Shown: positions 20,478 to 64,000 of the stretch, piece by piece
How positions within the stretch are numbered: the first letter of the stretch is position 1
Layout of the letters: each line of letters begins with the position of its first letter
Assembly: GCF_001194135.2 (NCBI RefSeq)
Contig: NC_068990.1
Coordinates: forward strand, 87,615,086-87,679,085
DNA from: Octopus bimaculoides
Lineage: Eukaryota
Length of the DNA: 64,000 nucleotides
Direction: 5' to 3'
The notes under the pieces: generated by a model
The model's database searches: none
Told to the model about the DNA's origin: nothing
Seen by the model: only the letters and a program-made list of their open reading frames with translations
Position numbers and translations under genes: made by a program

Positions 20478-21731
20478 NNNNNNNNNNNNNNNNNNNNNNN
20501 NNNNNNNNNNNNNNNNNNNNNNNNNNNNNNNNNNNNNNNNNNNNNNNNNNNNNNNNNNNNNNNNNNNNNNNNNNNNNNNNNNNNNNNNNNNNNNNNNNNN
20601 NNNNNNNNNNNNNNNNNNNNNNNNNNNNNNNNNNNNNNNNNNNNNNNNNNNNNNNNNNNNNNNNNNNNNNNNNNNNNNNNNNNNNNNNNNNNNNNNNNNN
20701 NNNNNNNNNNNNNNNNNNNNNNNNNNNNNNNNNNNNNNNNNNNNNNNNNNNNNNNNNNNNNNNNNNNNNNNNNNNNNNNNNNNNNNNNNNNNNNNNNNNN
20801 NNNNNNNNNNNNNNNNNNNNNNNNNNNNNNNNNNNNNNNNNNNNNNNNNNNNNNNNNNNNNNNNNNNNNNNNNNNNNNNNNNNNNNNNNNNNNNNNNNNN
20901 NNNNNNNNNNNNNNNNNNNNNNNNNNNNNNNNNNNNNNNNNNNNNNNNNNNNNNNNNNNNNNNNNNNNNNNNNNNNNNNNNNNNNNNNNNNNNNNNNNNN
21001 NNNNNNNNNNNNNNNNNNNNNNNNNNNNNNNNNNNNNNNNNNNNNNNNNNNNNNNNNNNNNNNNNNNNNNNNNNNNNNNNNNNNNNNNNNNNNNNNNNNN
21101 NNNNNNNNNNATATATATATATATATATATATATATACCAGAATGCTATATACACAAATTAATTCCGGTTGCTAAACTTCAATTAGATCTCTTTTGAGTT
21201 GGATGTATATTTTGGGAATTGTATTGTTTTGAATTTTGTATTTAGAAAGATAGAAATATAATTTTCCCATCAACGTTCTCCACACACACACCCACCCACC
21301 CACACGCTCATACACATACATACACACACACACCGTCACCGTGTGTCTGTATTGATGACTTCACATGGAAAATTTTTCAAAATGAAATACTTCGTAAATT
21401 TTGTTTTCTATTCATACGTTTGACCGACTGAGCTGTTACTGATTCTTGTAAAGAGGAACCCTATATATGGTCAAAGCTATTATTATTTTTTTAAAGTATA
21501 TATATACATGTGTGTGTGTGTTTACATTGATTGTTGAATTTTGCGTGAGAACTCAAATCAAGCATAAAAATGTAGATGAGTGATCATGAGTGCGTAAAAA
21601 TTTGACGGCAAATGTAATTCCAGCAGGAAAACAATAATATATGTAACCCAGATATGTTTATTAAAGAATTAAATTCCTGGCATTACAACAACAACAAAAC
21701 TAGTTTGCATCTGCCTGAGTTTTTCTTGTTT

Positions 21732-54501: not shown

Positions 54502-55559
54502 TTATAGCGACTAGTATGTACCACCCTGTACTCAATTTTTTATACGTCTTCTTAACCTTAGCACCAACCAATACAAACGTTATAAGAAACTCAAGCAGGA
54601 TTGTATTATCTGCTCATAATCTTTAAGAACCTATTTATTCAAGAATAATTACAGAAAAAAAATCGAACCTGTCTATAATTGAACATCTTTTCTATAAGAT
54701 ATATTTTATTATAAGGAAGCTCTGAAGGCCAATGAATTTACGGAAAAGCTGACCACTTCCCGAAAATAAAGTACGTAAATGGAAACTACACTATTTTTAG
54801 ACCTTACACATAAACACAAACTCGATAACTCGGACAGCCAAATACATGTACGTACACAGCCCACCCCTCACGTAATATGTATATACATGTGTCTGCGTGT
54901 GTATACATTTATACATAATATACGCATATAGCTAGATATACATATGTACATATATGATTCATGCATAGACATATTAATATATAAACATATACGCATACAC
55001 TTATATCATATGCACAAGCGTGTATGCATATATATGCCCTCATGCATATGTGTATGTATGTAAGCCACAAATGATGTTAATAGCTTGTTTTTGGTGGGGG
55101 GAGTTCTCTCAAAAACACATGTACCCCGGGCTTGGATATGTTAACACTTGCCTCTGTAGAACTCGATGTTCATTACGAAACTCTTAAGTCTATTTTAAAT
55201 AGTTTTTCTGATCCATTTACAAATTGTATCTATAACGTGCGTATTATTCAGTCTTTCTTTTTTTTTTTTTGCTCCAATTCTTAGCCAAATCTTTTTTTGC
55301 CCCATATCTCTATGATATTTACCCACTCAAACAAGTGCACCAAATTATTGGTGTAAATGTGAATTTATAATAAAGAGAGAAGAGCAGTAGGTTTCGAAGC
55401 AGCTATCGCTATATACTCTCTTTCTCGCTGTTTCTGACAGTGATGTTCACATTTTCAGTGCAGCTAACCCCAGTGATTATAGATGATCTAAAAAAAAATT
55501 TTTTAATCCGAAATATCTTTACCAGAACTATTATATTTGCACTTGATATAAGTTTTGAT

Positions 55560-56974: not shown

Positions 56975-57860
56975 CGGATTAGTGTTGGGACAACCGCATT
57001 CGTGGATTTTGGAAACACTCGACAATTGTGGAGTAGCTGAGAACGTGTGTGCACTCATTAAGAACAGCATACCTAGTTGGAAAACACGTCTTTCTTGTGG
57101 CAGCCAGCACTTAGCCGAGGTTACAATCAAAAGAGGTATCTTCCACGGAGACTCTTGTTCACCTTTCTTAGTTGTTGTAGCCTTGATCCCACTTTCTGTA
57201 GTCCTACGCGGAGGAAGAATGTACCTCGTTTCAACCACCTTCTCTTCATGGACGATTTAAAACTGTTCGCAAAAACAGATCCTGAAATGGAGAGGTTGGT
57301 TGACACTGTGCAGATGTGCAGCAAGGATATAGGGATGGAATTCGGTATCTCAAAGTGTGTGGTGCTCACTTTGAAAAGGAGGAAAAGAGCTGATTGTAGG
57401 GGCATCGAATTGCCGAACGGAGAGTGAATGGAAGACCCAGATGATGATGGGCACAAGTTCCTTGGGATCTTGGAGTTGGACAATATCTTGCACAGAAAAA
57501 TGAAAAACAAAGTCATCACTGCATATTTGAAGCGCCTCAAACTTCTCTTGAAACCAAAACTCAACACAAGGAACCTTCTGACTGCCATCAACATATGGAC
57601 TGTTGCTGCAGCCCGCTGTAGTGCACCCATCCTGAAATGGCCACTAGCGGAGATTAACCAACTCGATCGCACCACCCCAAAAGCAATGGCAGTGCATGGT
57701 ACCCTCCAGCCTATAGCCAATGTACACAGTCTCTACATGAAGAGGGGTAAAGGTGGACGTGGGCTGATTAGCGTATGGAAGTGCATCAACAATGAAAGAA
57801 AAAAACATGGCAGAATATTTGCTACAGTACAGACCTGCTAATGCAGAAGGATTTACCAAA
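56975..57860 (+). mobile_element. R4/Dong-clade non-LTR retrotransposon reverse transcriptase relic
   Basis: Three consecutive frames give PHSWI..., RGIFHGDSCSP, NHLLFMDDLKLF, DIGMEFGISKC, KFLGILE, LDRTTPK and SLYMKRGKGGRGL. One frameshift near 57220 and a stop at 57425. These are RT and thumb motifs typical of R4/Dong RLE-type LINEs. Confidence 0.9.
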
Positions 57861-59930: not shown

Positions 59931-62320
59931 ATCNNNNNNNNNNNNNNNNNNNNNNNNNNNNNNNNNNNNNNNNNNNNNNNNNNNNNNNNNNNNNNNNNNN
60001 NNNNNNNNNNNNNNNNNNNNNNNNNNNNNNNNNNNNNNNNNNNNNNNNNNNNNNNNNNNNNNNNNNNNNNNNNNNNNNNNNNNNNNNNNNNNNNNNNNNN
60101 NNNNNNNNNNNNNNNNNNNNNNNNNNNNNNNNNNNNNNNNNNNNNNNNNNNNNNNNNNNNNNNNNNNNNNNNNNNNNNNNNNNNNNNNNNNNNNNNNNNN
60201 NNNNNNNNNNNNNNNNNNNNNNNNNNNNNNNNNNNNNNNNNNNNNNNNNNNNNNCAGATAGGGTGATAAATTGAATATTCATTCAATTTAAAACCAAATG
60301 GCTTAGTATATAAAAAAAAATCTAAAAATTCAGAAAAAATTGTACTACACGTGTATAAGGTATGTCCACCTAGTGGTAATCCCTTATACACGTGTGTATA
60401 TATATATATAGATAGATAGATAGATAGATATGTATGTATGTATGTATGTATGTATCTAAACATGTGTGTATACATATATTTCTGTGAGTGAGTGTATGAG
60501 TGGGGGGGGGTACGTGTGCGTGTGTGCGCGTGCGCATGTACAGGCATCATCTTGGTGGATGATTTATCGTCTTTGGAGTTTGGATCATCTTTTGAAGATA
60601 ATCATAATTGGTGACTTTAGCGTGGTGTAATTTCATTCCCTGTTTAGTAAGGTAGGATATTCAAGCATTTTTCCGTGGTTCATAGCAGCAGATTACGGAA
60701 CCATTTACTTACGACGGCGGCAAATCTAGTATTTCTCGTTTTGCATTTTGTCGTCATGCTTATTGTCTTTCACTTTCCATTGTGTTAAGACACGGATGTT
60801 GCCTTTCTTTTGTATGTCTTCTGGAATGTGCAAGTATATGTCATTGAGTCTTTCACTAGTAGCGCTGGTACAATTTTTCAGTTTGTTTATCTTTGATAAC
60901 AGCTGGTTTATAGAATATGTTTGTTTCGACATAACGGGAATGTTATTGTTGTAGTGTGGTTGTATAAGTTTATAATTGTGTATTTGTATGTTCCTCGGTG
61001 TGTTGTTGTTTAATGATTGTATGATGGTTTTTTGTGCCGTAGTAGCTAACTTTCGTATTGTTTTTGCTGAATAATGTGTGATATTTGTTCTTTTGGAAAG
61101 TGTTTGCTGATCACTGCTAGGATACAACGTGCTACATTTGCGGTTAGGTTTAGAGTGGGTTGACTCAGATTGTGTTTGTTTTTCTGTTTTCTTTTTCTCT
61201 GTTCGTTTGAGACGCCTAAGGGATATATAGCGTTTTTTTTTCTCTCTTTTAATCAACTTGCTTTTACAGCTTCATTGTAGAATGATGCCGCTTGAATAAA
61301 TATTTTTTTGTAGACAAAATTGTTGATAATATTCACATTAATATTAATACTCACTGTTTCAAAAGTTTGTATATAAACTTAAATGCAATATCATCACCTT
61401 CATACACACACGTAGAAAGGAGCTTTTATAATGCTTTTCTACTTGCCATTGTGTGTGTGNNNNNNNNNNNNNNNNNNNNNNNNNNNNNNNNNNNNNNNNN
61501 NNNNNNNNNNNNNNNNNNNNNNNNNNNNNNNNNNNNNNNNNNNNNNNNNNNNNNNNNNNNNNNNNNNNNNNNNNNNNNNNNNNNNNNNNNNNNNNNNNNN
61601 NNNNNNNNNNNNNNNNNNNNNNNNNNNNNNNNNNNNNNNNNNNNNNNNNNNNNNNNNNNNNNNNNNNNNNNNNNNNNNNNNNNNNNNNNNNNNNNNNNNN
61701 NNNNNNNNNNNNNNNNNNNNNNNNNNNNNNNNNNNNNNNNNNNNNNNNNNNNNNNNNNNNNNNNNNNNNNNNNNNNNNNNNNNNNNNNNNNNNNNNNNNN
61801 NNNNNNNNNNNNNNNNNNNNNNNNNNNNNNNNNNNNNNNNNNNNNNNNNNNNNNNNNNNNNNNNNNNNNNNNNNNNNNNNNNNNNNNNNNNNNNNNNNNN
61901 NNNNNNNNNNNNNNNNNNNNNNNNNNNNNNNNNNNNNNNNNNNNNNNNNNNNNNNNNNNNNNNNNNNNNNNNNNNNNNNNNNNNNNNNNNNNNNNNNNNN
62001 NNNNNNNNNNNNNNNNNNNNNNNNNNNNNNNNNNNNNNNNNNNNNNNNNNNNNNNNNNNNNNNNNNNNNNNNNNNNNNNNNNNNNNNNNNNNNNNNNNNN
62101 NNNNNNNNNNNNNNNNNNNNNNNNNNNNNNNNNNNNNNNNNNNNNNNNNNNNNNNNNNNNNNNNNNNNNNNNNNNNNNNNNNNNNNNNNNNNNNNNNNNN
62201 NNNNNNNNNNNNNNNNNNNNNNNNNNNNNNNNNNNNNNNNNNNNNNNNNNNNNNNNNNNNNNNNNNNNNNNNNNNNNNNNNNNNNNNNNNNNNNNNNNNN
62301 NNNNNNNNNNNNNNNNNNNN

Positions 62321-62525
62321 AACGAAGGAGGGGGTGACGATGAAGGGAGAGGGAGGAGAGAAGAAGGTGGGTAGGAGTGGAGAGGAAGTACGTGTCAGAG
62401 CAAGAGAGGAGGAGAGGTGGGTGGAAGCGAAGAGAGGAAGTAGGTATGAGAGGAAGAGAGGAGAGAGGAAGAGAGGAGAGAGGAAGAGAGGAGAGCGGAA
62501 GGGAGTTAGATAAAGAGGGGAGGGG
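62321..62525. repeat. Polypurine tract with 3 copies of AGGAAGAGAGGAGAG
   Basis: Seen directly; lies between the last gap and the 3' end of the zinc-finger gene. Confidence 0.85.
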
Positions 62526-62599
62526 AGTTAAGCCCATGTGTATGTATGTATGTGGGGAGGGGCTTGATGTGCGCATAGTCAAATAAATACCTGAAGCAA

Positions 62600-62605
62600 T
62601 TTATT
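62600..62605 (-). promoter_or_regulatory. Candidate polyadenylation signal for the zinc-finger ORF
   Basis: AATAAA on the minus strand about 115 nt after the stop, followed by a GT/T-rich stretch (GGTATTTATTTG). Confidence 0.5.
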
Positions 62606-62718: not shown

Positions 62719-63999
62719 TCAAACTTTACAAGCCACAAGGAATATTTCCATCTCAGTCAACTCTAGAATGCACCAAGATGGAAATATTTCATGAAGCCAA
62801 CTGGTTCCAACTGGTAAGAACATATCTAAGTTACAATGAAGGAATTTAAAAAATTTTTGCAAACTGTGTAGTTGTTCTGAGAGTATCTGTTGATTGAATC
62901 CTTTCTGTTCACAGAGGATGCTGATCAGAGCAGAGAGATTACTTCCAATAACTTTCCCCCAAAAAAAATTACCAAAATCTTCATCTTTTGATAATGTAAG
63001 CAGAAAGTCTCGGATATATCCGGAACGGCTCACTACAGTTTTGCACTGCACACCTCCATTTTGAAACTGAGAACATTCAAATGCATTTATTACTGCCTCC
63101 ATGAAAAATTTGTCAGGTGTTAAAATGATACTTTCAGAAGTTTGTCTAATATATTTAGAGATGTTAGACTCTACAGAGATATTGTGGACCTGAGTAAGAT
63201 GCCATTTCATATGGAACTGTATTGAATGACACAAGGGACATATGCGGCAGCCATACTTCATTTCAGTTTTGTTATAACTGCTCATATCACAATAGAATTT
63301 CTGCTTCCATTTGGGTAATTCTGAATGGGAGTTGCTCAGGTGTGTCTTAATTTGATGAAAAATTGCTTCACAGTAAGGTACAGGACACTTTACTAAACAG
63401 TCTGACTCTGAGAGAATCGTTCTTGATCTTTCTTCAGTTTCAAAACTTTTGCTTGGCGTTTTTTGCGTGCTTGGAGTAGAATATGGTGTTATCAACAGAG
63501 TTTCATTAGTTCTTTCATATCCATTCTGTGAATCAGAGAAATCCAAATCCGTGCCTTCATTTTTAATTGCTGATAGGGATTTAAGTTCATTTTCATCAAA
63601 TAACTGTTTAGAATTATTTAACAATCCGTTAGAAGTTTTTGGATCTGGAGAAGATATTCTTTGAAACTTTGACCTAAAGTGACTATGTTTGGAAGAATTG
63701 GCAGTTAATCCATAAATGCCTTTGTTATTATCTGTTTCTGTTTTCAAATCTAAAATCAAATGTTGATTCATGTTCAAATCTTGTTGCTTAGAAGATTGAG
63801 AATAGTAATAATCAGTTGAGGAGTCCAATATGTATGTATGGGAATCTAATGAATCTAAGCAGCTAGAAAACGTCATCTGCTTCACAATTTCACTATCCAA
63901 ATCAATTTTATAGAAGTTGGAATTTAGATGAAAGTCTTGTTCATATAATGTAATAGCATTTCTCGGGAGTGTCTTGTATGTTACAATTATGTCATCCTT
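62719..63999 (-). CDS. Partial CDS (5' end outside window, or large terminal exon): S/T/N-rich N-terminal region, two atypical C2H2-like zinc fingers and a helical C-terminal domain
   Basis: The 393-aa ORF-track entry continues without a stop to the window edge (I translated 33 more codons: KDDIIVTYKTLPRNAITLYEQDFHLNSNFYKID), giving 426 aa. It has no simple repeats or frameshifts. Motifs CPVPYC-x9-H-x4-H (63325-63387) and CPLC-x9-H-x4-H (63184-63240). TGA at 62719-62721, AATAAA about 115 nt downstream. Confidence 0.8.
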   Translation of the reverse strand, partial: KDDIIVTYKTLPRNAITLYEQDFHLNSNFYKIDLDSEIVKQMTFSSCLDSLDSHTYILDSSTDYYYSQSSKQQDLNMNQHLILDLKTETDNNKGIYGLTANSSKHSHFRSKFQRISSPDPKTSNGLLNNSKQLFDENELKSLSAIKNEGTDLDFSDSQNGYERTNETLLITPYSTPSTQKTPSKSFETEERSRTILSESDCLVKCPVPYCEAIFHQIKTHLSNSHSELPKWKQKFYCDMSSYNKTEMKYGCRICPLCHSIQFHMKWHLTQVHNISVESNISKYIRQTSESIILTPDKFFMEAVINAFECSQFQNGGVQCKTVVSRSGYIRDFLLTLSKDEDFGNFFWGKVIGSNLSALISILCEQKGFNQQILSEQLHSLQKFFKFLHCNLDMFLPVGTSWLHEIFPSWCILELTEMEIFLVACKV

Positions 64000-64000
64000 A

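Follow-up and report, generated by a model that had tools for sequence, protein, structure and literature searches.

Can a host gene be made from the DNA-binding half of a tyrosine recombinase once the catalytic half is gone? This question is raised by a long open reading frame (ORF) at the edge of a 64,000-nucleotide stretch of the Octopus bimaculoides genome (contig NC_068990.1, positions 87,615,086 to 87,679,085), referred to here at its full length as the window. The frame encodes two short zinc fingers followed by a predicted helical domain. A sequence-only reading had proposed that it is an intact gene, possibly domesticated from a Crypton-like tyrosine-recombinase element and lacking the catalytic domain. 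We find that the ORF is very likely a real, conserved gene. Its finger-plus-helix module probably derives from a tyrosine-recombinase element whose catalytic half has been lost, as judged from profile comparisons with recombinases and with proteins that still carry both halves.

Transposon DNA-binding domains recruited by hosts are a recurring source of new regulators. In the literature searched, the animal cases that involve tyrosine-recombinase elements keep a dead catalytic domain (DUF3504).

An intact gene in octopods

Translation of the minus strand of window positions 62719-63999 yields 426 sense codons and then TGA. Given a stop probability of 0.071 per codon, computed from the window's own base composition, the probability of 426 open codons is 2e-14, and about 3e-9 such frames are expected over every start position on both strands. 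The runner-up among N-free open frames in the window has 201 codons. Longer ORFs in a mechanical listing of the window were rejected as artefacts of the 17 N gaps or as low-complexity sequence, and none had a family match. The 426-codon frame is open up to the window edge and its 5' end lies outside; judged from the orthologues described below, 166 further codons lie beyond position 64000, and the window holds the 3' 72% of a gene of 592-597 amino acids (aa) with a single coding exon. AATAAA is found at 62600-62605 on the minus strand, 113 nucleotides (nt) past the stop, and is kept in all three species compared. A polypyrimidine tract and AG approximately 45 nt 5' of the ATG are conserved in the two species having the 5' end, and this acceptor-like tract suggests a spliced 5' untranslated region (UTR).

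Two orthologues were retrieved by a word-indexed protein search. P0001, an Octopus vulgaris hypothetical protein of 592 aa, is 90% identical across all 426 residues, and P0002, a 597-aa protein from a Logan assembly of a third, octopod-like species, is 80% identical. Neither O. vulgaris chromosome OX597823.1 nor the third species shows any interruption of the coding sequence. The Logan contigs that bear homologues are genomic in appearance. Nucleotide similarity to O. vulgaris extends from the window edge past the stop to 62537, with 92.6% identity, and a second colinear block joins window 61454-60549 to positions 20512-21411 of the O. vulgaris locus (L002) at 91.4% identity. No second copy of the gene was detected by tblastn, either in the 64 kb of the window or in the 22 kb examined from O. 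vulgaris, and an exhaustive HMMER search returned one protein cluster per lineage. Within the loci examined, the gene has the orthologous, syntenic position and apparent single copy of a domesticated sequence.

The ratio of nonsynonymous to synonymous substitution rates (dN/dS), estimated by the Nei-Gojobori method, is 0.42-0.43 in all three octopod pairs and significantly below 1, with synonymous changes significantly over-represented in the three pairs (Fisher P 1.5e-3 to 4e-7). Among octopods, constraint is strongest in the last 160 residues (dN/dS 0.24-0.36), and the ratio of the finger segment rises to 0.8-1.0 in two pairs.

These results bear out the sequence-only reading of an intact gene candidate with at least 426 uninterrupted codons, a stop and AATAAA, the orthologues being intact as well. 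The peptides that it quoted are present, AVINAFECSQ... from 63096 and ...QKFFKFL ending at 62839; the whole gene has about 592 codons in one coding exon. The proposal of domestication was well founded as far as synteny, apparent single copy and a dN/dS of about 0.4 are concerned, and the Crypton origin attached to it was not established.

A distant homologue ends at the same residue

With a HMMER profile built from the three orthologues, all 1.84 billion representatives were searched, and only five proteins scored better than E 0.001. The only relatives over the full stretch besides the orthologues were P0003 and P0006. P0003 (681 aa, E 4e-28) matches from slightly N-terminal of finger 1 all the way to its final residue, with 31% identity to the octopus protein over 246 aa and colinearity to the end, where ...LVSCKV corresponds to octopus ...LVACKV. 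Its cluster holds nine near-identical members together with P0027 at about 93% identity. Between P0003 and P0027, dN/dS is 0.37 overall, 0.51 in the N-terminal part, 0.29 in the fingers and 0.11 in the helical tail. No nucleotide similarity was detected between P0003/P0027 and the octopus loci. At least five assemblies, drawn from two lineages with just 31% identity between them, carry the frame intact, and purifying selection on an intact ORF, a further feature of domestication, is seen in octopods and in this second lineage. Since P0003 is colinear to its last residue and constrained, the architecture, including the position of the stop, is old and constrained.

The remaining HMMER matches were a low-complexity protein and P0004, a classical multi-finger C2H2 protein (E 4e-9, three repeats summed). 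The octopus fingers are a short-spaced variant, C-x4-C-x9-H-x4-H and C-x2-C-x9-H-x4-H versus the classical C-x2-4-C-x12-H-x3-5-H, and the octopus protein has no zf-C2H2 Pfam match; membership of the classical C2H2 family was ruled out on these two grounds.

Recombinase-bearing relatives share the fingers and the motif order

P0006 (801 aa, HMMER E 5e-4) has a finger pair in common with the octopus protein. Residues 369-443 of P0001 align with 179-256 of P0006 (33% identity over 78 aa, BLASTP E 6e-11), and tblastn of P0006 against the window gives E 5e-10. When five cephalopod-type sequences were compared by hhalign with P0006 and a second protein, P0007, the finger pair was matched at E 3.6e-12 and 97.6% probability. 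P0006 is the best single-stretch finger match and the sole bearer, outside cephalopod-type proteins, of the linker motif HS[DE]LPKWK, which reads HSELPKWKQK in octopus and HSDLPKWKHK in P0006.

Past the fingers, P0006 reads LISDFAEHLQVPDGG..., 63 residues, GTLANYVSSVKLLLSFL, and then YIRDHLLL..NGRRAGDLINMTMLEF..HKT...LVRGEV...LCHSAATSDRHY. P0007 (998 aa), which was found with P0006 as query, has the same order, with IFSRFETWLRGPDGG, 57 residues and TLKAYLGALHRFYAFL; degraded copies on a metagenome contig, L006, carry a finger, FQDWMFSPDGGLKNDK and ANRSGVLANMTMEEF. At the corresponding place the octopus protein has FFMEAVINAFECSQFQNGG, 60 residues and LHSLQKFFKFL. The spacing from GG to L..L..F..FL is therefore 60 aa in octopus versus 57 and 63 aa in the element proteins, and the order of the motifs is identical. 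The sequence-only reading had pointed to just such an order in animal recombinase-bearing elements (short fingers, an F..W/F...GG helix and an L..L..F..FL helix), and it is indeed found in P0006, in P0007 and, truncated, on L006; in P0006 and P0007 it is followed by a recombinase-like catalytic domain.

The C-terminal halves of P0006 and P0007 match each other at E 9e-14. P0006 matches Pfam Phage_integrase (PF00589) at E 6e-5, with 23 bits against a curated cut-off of 27. A XerD profile was constructed from Escherichia coli XerD and 79 genomes (80 sequences), and P0006 plus P0007 match its catalytic domain in hhalign at E 6.8e-5 and 63% probability, and both the Arg box and the second Arg fall in register; the matching K, H and Y residues were picked out by eye. 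Copies of P0007 that are 98-99% identical lie on different large contigs of one assembly, and three of them have approximately 7.4 kb plus upstream tandem repeats in common. Neither a reverse transcriptase nor any other Pfam domain was found near the P0007 recombinase ORF, in or beside the common part. From the Pfam, XerD and copy evidence, which is sub-threshold but mutually consistent, we therefore take P0006, P0007 and the L006 copies to be tyrosine-recombinase element proteins. Word-indexed protein searches with P0006 and with a P0006+P0007 profile returned almost nothing, a metagenome scan gave the one locus L006, and a viral scan gave none; with element homologues so scarce, a deep profile of the element family could not be built.

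The helical tail as a candidate core-binding domain

Four long helices are predicted in both AlphaFold2 (AF2) runs, which are of low confidence, with a predicted local distance difference test (pLDDT) score below 60 for these helices. Predicted helix A runs to FQNGG, helix B is KTVVSRSGYIRDFLLTL and helix D is LSEQLHSLQKFFKFLH. The XerD core-binding profile (residues 1-112) and the cephalopod helices were aligned by hhalign in the expected register over 82 columns (query 15-103, XerD 6-89) with P 0.015; GGVQCKTV..YIRDFL is aligned with XerD GLSENTL..YRRDL, and LSEQLHSLQKFFKFL with ARLLSAVRRLFQYL. Of 200 column shuffles, one reached this score (z 3.3); when reversed, the alignment scored at background. 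When the full-length XerD profile was used, the best match was in its core-binding part, not in the larger catalytic part. The element helices alone match XerD over the last helix with P 0.001 (0/300 shuffles), and the pooled cephalopod-plus-element alignment matches over 83 columns with P 0.0015 (0/300 shuffles, z 6.2). As single sequences, P0001, P0002 and P0007 outscore all 38 natural-sequence decoys against XerD, and P0006 ties with the best decoy.

With a permissive threshold, hhalign extends the alignment to the end of the protein, placing ILELTEREI..FLVACK with XerD LSEAQVERLLQAP, the first catalytic-domain helix. The octopus tail thus aligns loosely, and with low confidence, to the XerD interdomain linker and first catalytic helix (LSEAQVERLL). 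If this tail alignment is right, the frame may stop just inside the former catalytic domain, a tentative placement.

It is probable but not proven that the octopus helices are a tyrosine-recombinase core-binding domain. The sequence-only reading had suggested the same; the XerD alignments favour it modestly, and the database and structure searches described below do not.

The catalytic half is missing

The order of core-binding domain and then catalytic domain, present in P0006 and P0007, is absent in the octopus gene. The catalytic parts of both proteins were used as tblastn queries against the window (62 kb 3' of the gene, minus N gaps), O. vulgaris L002 and the other contigs, and the best match had E 0.48. 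No catalytic-like sequence follows the stop in the window, L002, L001, L004 or L088, and a downstream catalytic exon was ruled out by this search. The TGA probably marks the true C-terminus, since the terminal residues and the position of the stop are conserved. The sequence-only reading that no catalytic domain follows the octopus helices is confirmed by both the stop and the tblastn result.

Weighing the alternatives

The alternative that survives best, although unlikely, is that the gene is a lineage-specific zinc-finger gene with a tail unrelated to recombinases, its likeness to P0006 being due to domain shuffling or to capture of host fingers by an element. Several results count in its favour and weigh against descent from a recombinase. 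Taken alone, no part but the finger pair reaches significance, and since P0004 scores by summed repeats, part of the finger similarity is generic. Direct hhalign comparison of the octopus helices with the element helices was not significant (P 0.13), the MAFFT placement of element helices 1-2 was inconsistent (P0007 was left out of the structure alignment owing to its instability there), and P0003 alone gave no XerD signal (score 9.0). Pfam, including the Phage_int_SAM_* families, gave no match at E<=10 for the whole octopus protein or its isolated helices; the isolated helical regions of P0003, P0006 and P0007 likewise had no Phage_int_SAM or other Pfam match at E<=10. PDB sequence searches found nothing, whether the query was the protein by itself, a profile of the element pair or the pooled profile of the helices. 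Mean pLDDT was 29 for the full-length AF2 model (3 sequences) and 47 for the C-terminal 225 aa (6 sequences), and the best Foldseek match of the low-confidence model in the PDB had E 2.3, which is noise; given the low confidence of the models, the Foldseek search was uninformative. The recombinase identity of P0006 and P0007 itself rests on sub-threshold scores.

Against an unrelated tail stand the end-to-end alignment to the XerD core-binding domain, with P of about 0.01 and better when the element proteins are pooled, and the order and spacing of the post-finger motifs, which match those of three recombinase-type proteins. Moreover, the core-binding domain is universal in XerC/D-type recombinases (PMC3537659), which makes descent from element to gene the simpler account. 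We infer this direction rather than the reverse, and retain as probable the origin of the finger-plus-helix module from a tyrosine-recombinase element.

It is far less likely that the ORF still belongs to a mobile element, as a truncated or non-autonomous copy of a tyrosine-recombinase element left intact by chance. Outside the cephalopods, the proteins closest to it are of element type, and one of them, P0007, is multicopy at 98-99% identity; the octopus coding sequence is intronless, and its single-copy status was judged from the loci examined. However, in two species the gene lies at orthologous positions between colinear flanking sequences, no extra copy was present in the 86 kb examined, each of two lineages has one protein cluster in the exhaustive search, and purifying selection acts in both deep lineages, with the stop position conserved. 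The acceptor-like tract before the ATG likewise argues for a host gene. No flanking terminal repeats were among the repeats listed, a list dominated by simple repeats; so many simple palindromic repeats turned up when the surroundings of the O. vulgaris gene were scanned for inverted repeats that the scan was uninformative about element termini.

A recently dead pseudogene or a chance-preserved frame is least likely of all: the coding sequence is close in nucleotide identity to its flank (92.6% and 91.4%) and the finger segment has a dN/dS of 0.8-1.0 in two pairs, but at least five assemblies across the two divergent lineages carry an unbroken frame, its chance expectation is minute and its overall dN/dS is significantly below 1.

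Features of the locus and neighboring sequences

The proposed layout of the protein is an orphan N-terminal region, a low-complexity middle, two short-spaced CCHH fingers and a C-terminal four-helix domain. The features that fall in the window are given in Table 1.

Table 1 Window coordinates of the gene, its encoded motifs and its 3' flank
Feature	Window coordinates	Strand	Basis
Partial coding sequence, last 426 of ~592 codons	62722..63999	-	90% aa identity to P0001 and 80% to P0002, both uninterrupted genomic ORFs
Zinc finger 1, CPVPYC-x9-H-x4-H (C-x4-C-x9-H-x4-H), short-spaced C2H2-like	63325..63387	-	Cys/His ligands invariant in octopus, P0003, P0006 and P0007
Linker motif SELPKWKQK, adjoining finger 1	63298..63324	-	Outside cephalopod-type proteins only in recombinase protein P0006 (SDLPKWKHK)
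Zinc finger 2, CRICPLC-x9-H-x4-H	63184..63249	-	Sequence and alignment
Four predicted helices (~96 aa), candidate core-binding (SAM-like) domain	62830..63117	-	Low-confidence AF2 models, hhalign to XerD, lowest dN/dS
C-terminal tail LDMFLPVG...ILELTEMEIFLVACKV	62722..62829	-	Conserved to last residue in distant homologue P0003
Stop codon TGA	62719..62721	-	Position identical in all homologues
Conserved 3' flank or UTR including AATAAA	62537..62718	-	Similarity to O. vulgaris and third species
Downstream block, synteny anchor outside the gene	60549..61454	.	91% identity, colinear with O. vulgaris

In O. vulgaris, approximately 8.5 kb separate the 3' flank of the gene from the next syntenic block (L002 11968-20512), much of it tandem or palindromic repeat, and units of this region also resemble window 54875-55062. 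The matching interval of the window is only about 1.1 kb long and 861 of its bases are N (N gap 61460-62320); this gap probably hides a collapsed repeat array. Right after the poly(A) signal region, at window 62440-62560 on the minus strand, a low-complexity run rich in CT (CTCTCCTCTCTTCCT repeated) occurs together with a (CATA)n-like tract, and the third-species contig L001 terminates in (CA)n at the corresponding place. Elsewhere in the window, GC content rises to 0.45-0.46 from a background of about 0.35 at 57000-57750, over a 201-codon minus-strand frame (57130-57732) that has no significant Pfam match.

A motif about 45 aa long (RKHLxFNxDxTxIDKSPxPST...L[FL]xxD) recurs four or five times within residues 1-260 of P0003. 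The octopus counterpart is one weakly similar copy (FKDDIIVTYKTLPRNAITLYEQDF) at the window edge, 63931-63999. The P0007-family ORF has in-frame tandem repeats of 135 nt (45 aa) between the fingers and the helical domain (L005 10644-11187, with matching repeats in L089 and L090), and their variable number yields proteins of 991, 998, 1036 and 1043 aa. Upstream of this ORF lie tandem repeat arrays of several hundred bp, some of them inverted. A long interspersed nuclear element (LINE)-like pair (RVT_1 and an endonuclease/exonuclease/phosphatase domain) at L090 12224-14146, a few kb 3' of one P0007 copy and outside the common region, is an unrelated neighbor and not part of the recombinase element. 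Positions 1-3392 of L006 (JGI metagenome contig Ga0209366_1016215) hold at least two degraded, rearranged copies of the finger-plus-recombinase family; in one of them the helical domain is internally deleted and the PDGG helix abuts the catalytic Arg box.

Proposed origin and function

The sequence is most likely a lineage-restricted, apparently single-copy host gene with a single coding exon. We propose that its finger-plus-helix module came from an animal tyrosine-recombinase element, as the DNA-binding front half of the element's recombinase, in which accessory fingers would have preceded the core-binding domain, and that the frame terminates close to the expected beginning of the catalytic domain. 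Lacking a catalytic domain, the protein would be unable to cut or rejoin DNA. It is hypothesized to bind DNA through the fingers and the helical bundle, sequence-specifically and without recombination. Most likely it would regulate transcription or chromatin; less likely, it would act as a repressor by sitting on the ends of related elements. A host regulatory role is favored by the age of the architecture and by the bundle being its most constrained part.

Comparison with known systems

The sequence-only label of Crypton-like is not supported, since no DUF3504 match was found by Pfam in the octopus protein, P0006 or P0007. Animal Crypton-derived genes (KCTD1, KIAA1958, ZMYM2/3/4, QRICH1 and WOC) are genuine domestications that keep DUF3504 (Kojima and Jurka 2011, PMC3212892), a relic of the recombinase catalytic domain (PMC3212892, PMC13465315). 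The octopus gene would resemble them in its tyrosine-recombinase-element origin, conservation, selection and loss of recombination activity. However, those genes retain the catalytic relic, whereas the octopus gene retains the opposite half, and its element relatives are without DUF3504, P0006 weakly matching PF00589 instead. Membership of the DUF3504 family was ruled out on the missing match.

The element proteins P0006 and P0007 and the L006 copies are like the octopus protein in their two CPxxxC-x9-H-x4-H fingers, F..W/F...(P)[DN]GG and L..L..F..FL, and P0006 also in HS[DE]LPKWK. P0006 and P0007 differ in that they continue into a catalytic domain (Arg box, HKT, second Arg, final H...Y), and P0007 is multicopy; the second finger is C-x2-C in octopus versus C-x4-C in the element proteins. 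The core-binding domain of XerD/XerC is comparable to the octopus helices in length (about 90 aa), in having four helices, as predicted for octopus, and similar spacing to the linker, in G-[LV]-x-x-[KN]-T-[VL] ... RD of helix B and in L..L..F..FL of helix D. The octopus protein differs in having no Pfam-level match, 15-18% identity and no catalytic partner domain in the same protein.

A closer precedent than the Crypton-derived genes is the plant ALOG domain (PMC3537659). Recombinases of the XerC/D type place their N-terminal helical domain in the major groove at the core site and frequently carry accessory DNA-binding domains fused to their N terminus; decayed copies of ALOG-related elements occur in molluscs and other marine animals (PMC3537659). 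Like ALOG, the octopus gene product would be a host protein in which nothing of a recombinase is kept but its four-helix N-terminal DNA-binding domain, with the catalytic domain gone and low-complexity flanks. In both, the link to XerD is visible only by profile methods with weak E-values, and related element copies are found in marine invertebrates. They differ in the zinc ribbon (HxxxC...CxC) that separates helices 2 and 3 of ALOG, whereas the octopus protein has no such insert and carries two CCHH fingers upstream; the octopus gene is also an animal gene, and the element relatives examined show no reverse transcriptase. No Cys/His ligands lie between octopus helices B and C (SKDEDFGNFFWGK), and no Pfam ALOG match was found. 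With the zinc ribbon, an ALOG feature (PMC3537659), and the Pfam match both absent, ALOG membership was ruled out, and the octopus case would be a recruitment independent of ALOG and analogous to it.

In the literature searched, no such animal gene was found described, which is not proof of novelty. The full proposal is possible, though we hold it more tentatively than the element origin of the module: an old cephalopod family would have arisen from the DNA-binding half of a transposon, severed from the catalytic half and kept as a sequence-specific regulator, as the first animal counterpart of ALOG. If true, the gene would be a candidate lineage-specific DNA-binding protein in cephalopods, and it would mark a second, independent route from tyrosine-recombinase elements into host regulation, a mirror image of the DUF3504 domestications.

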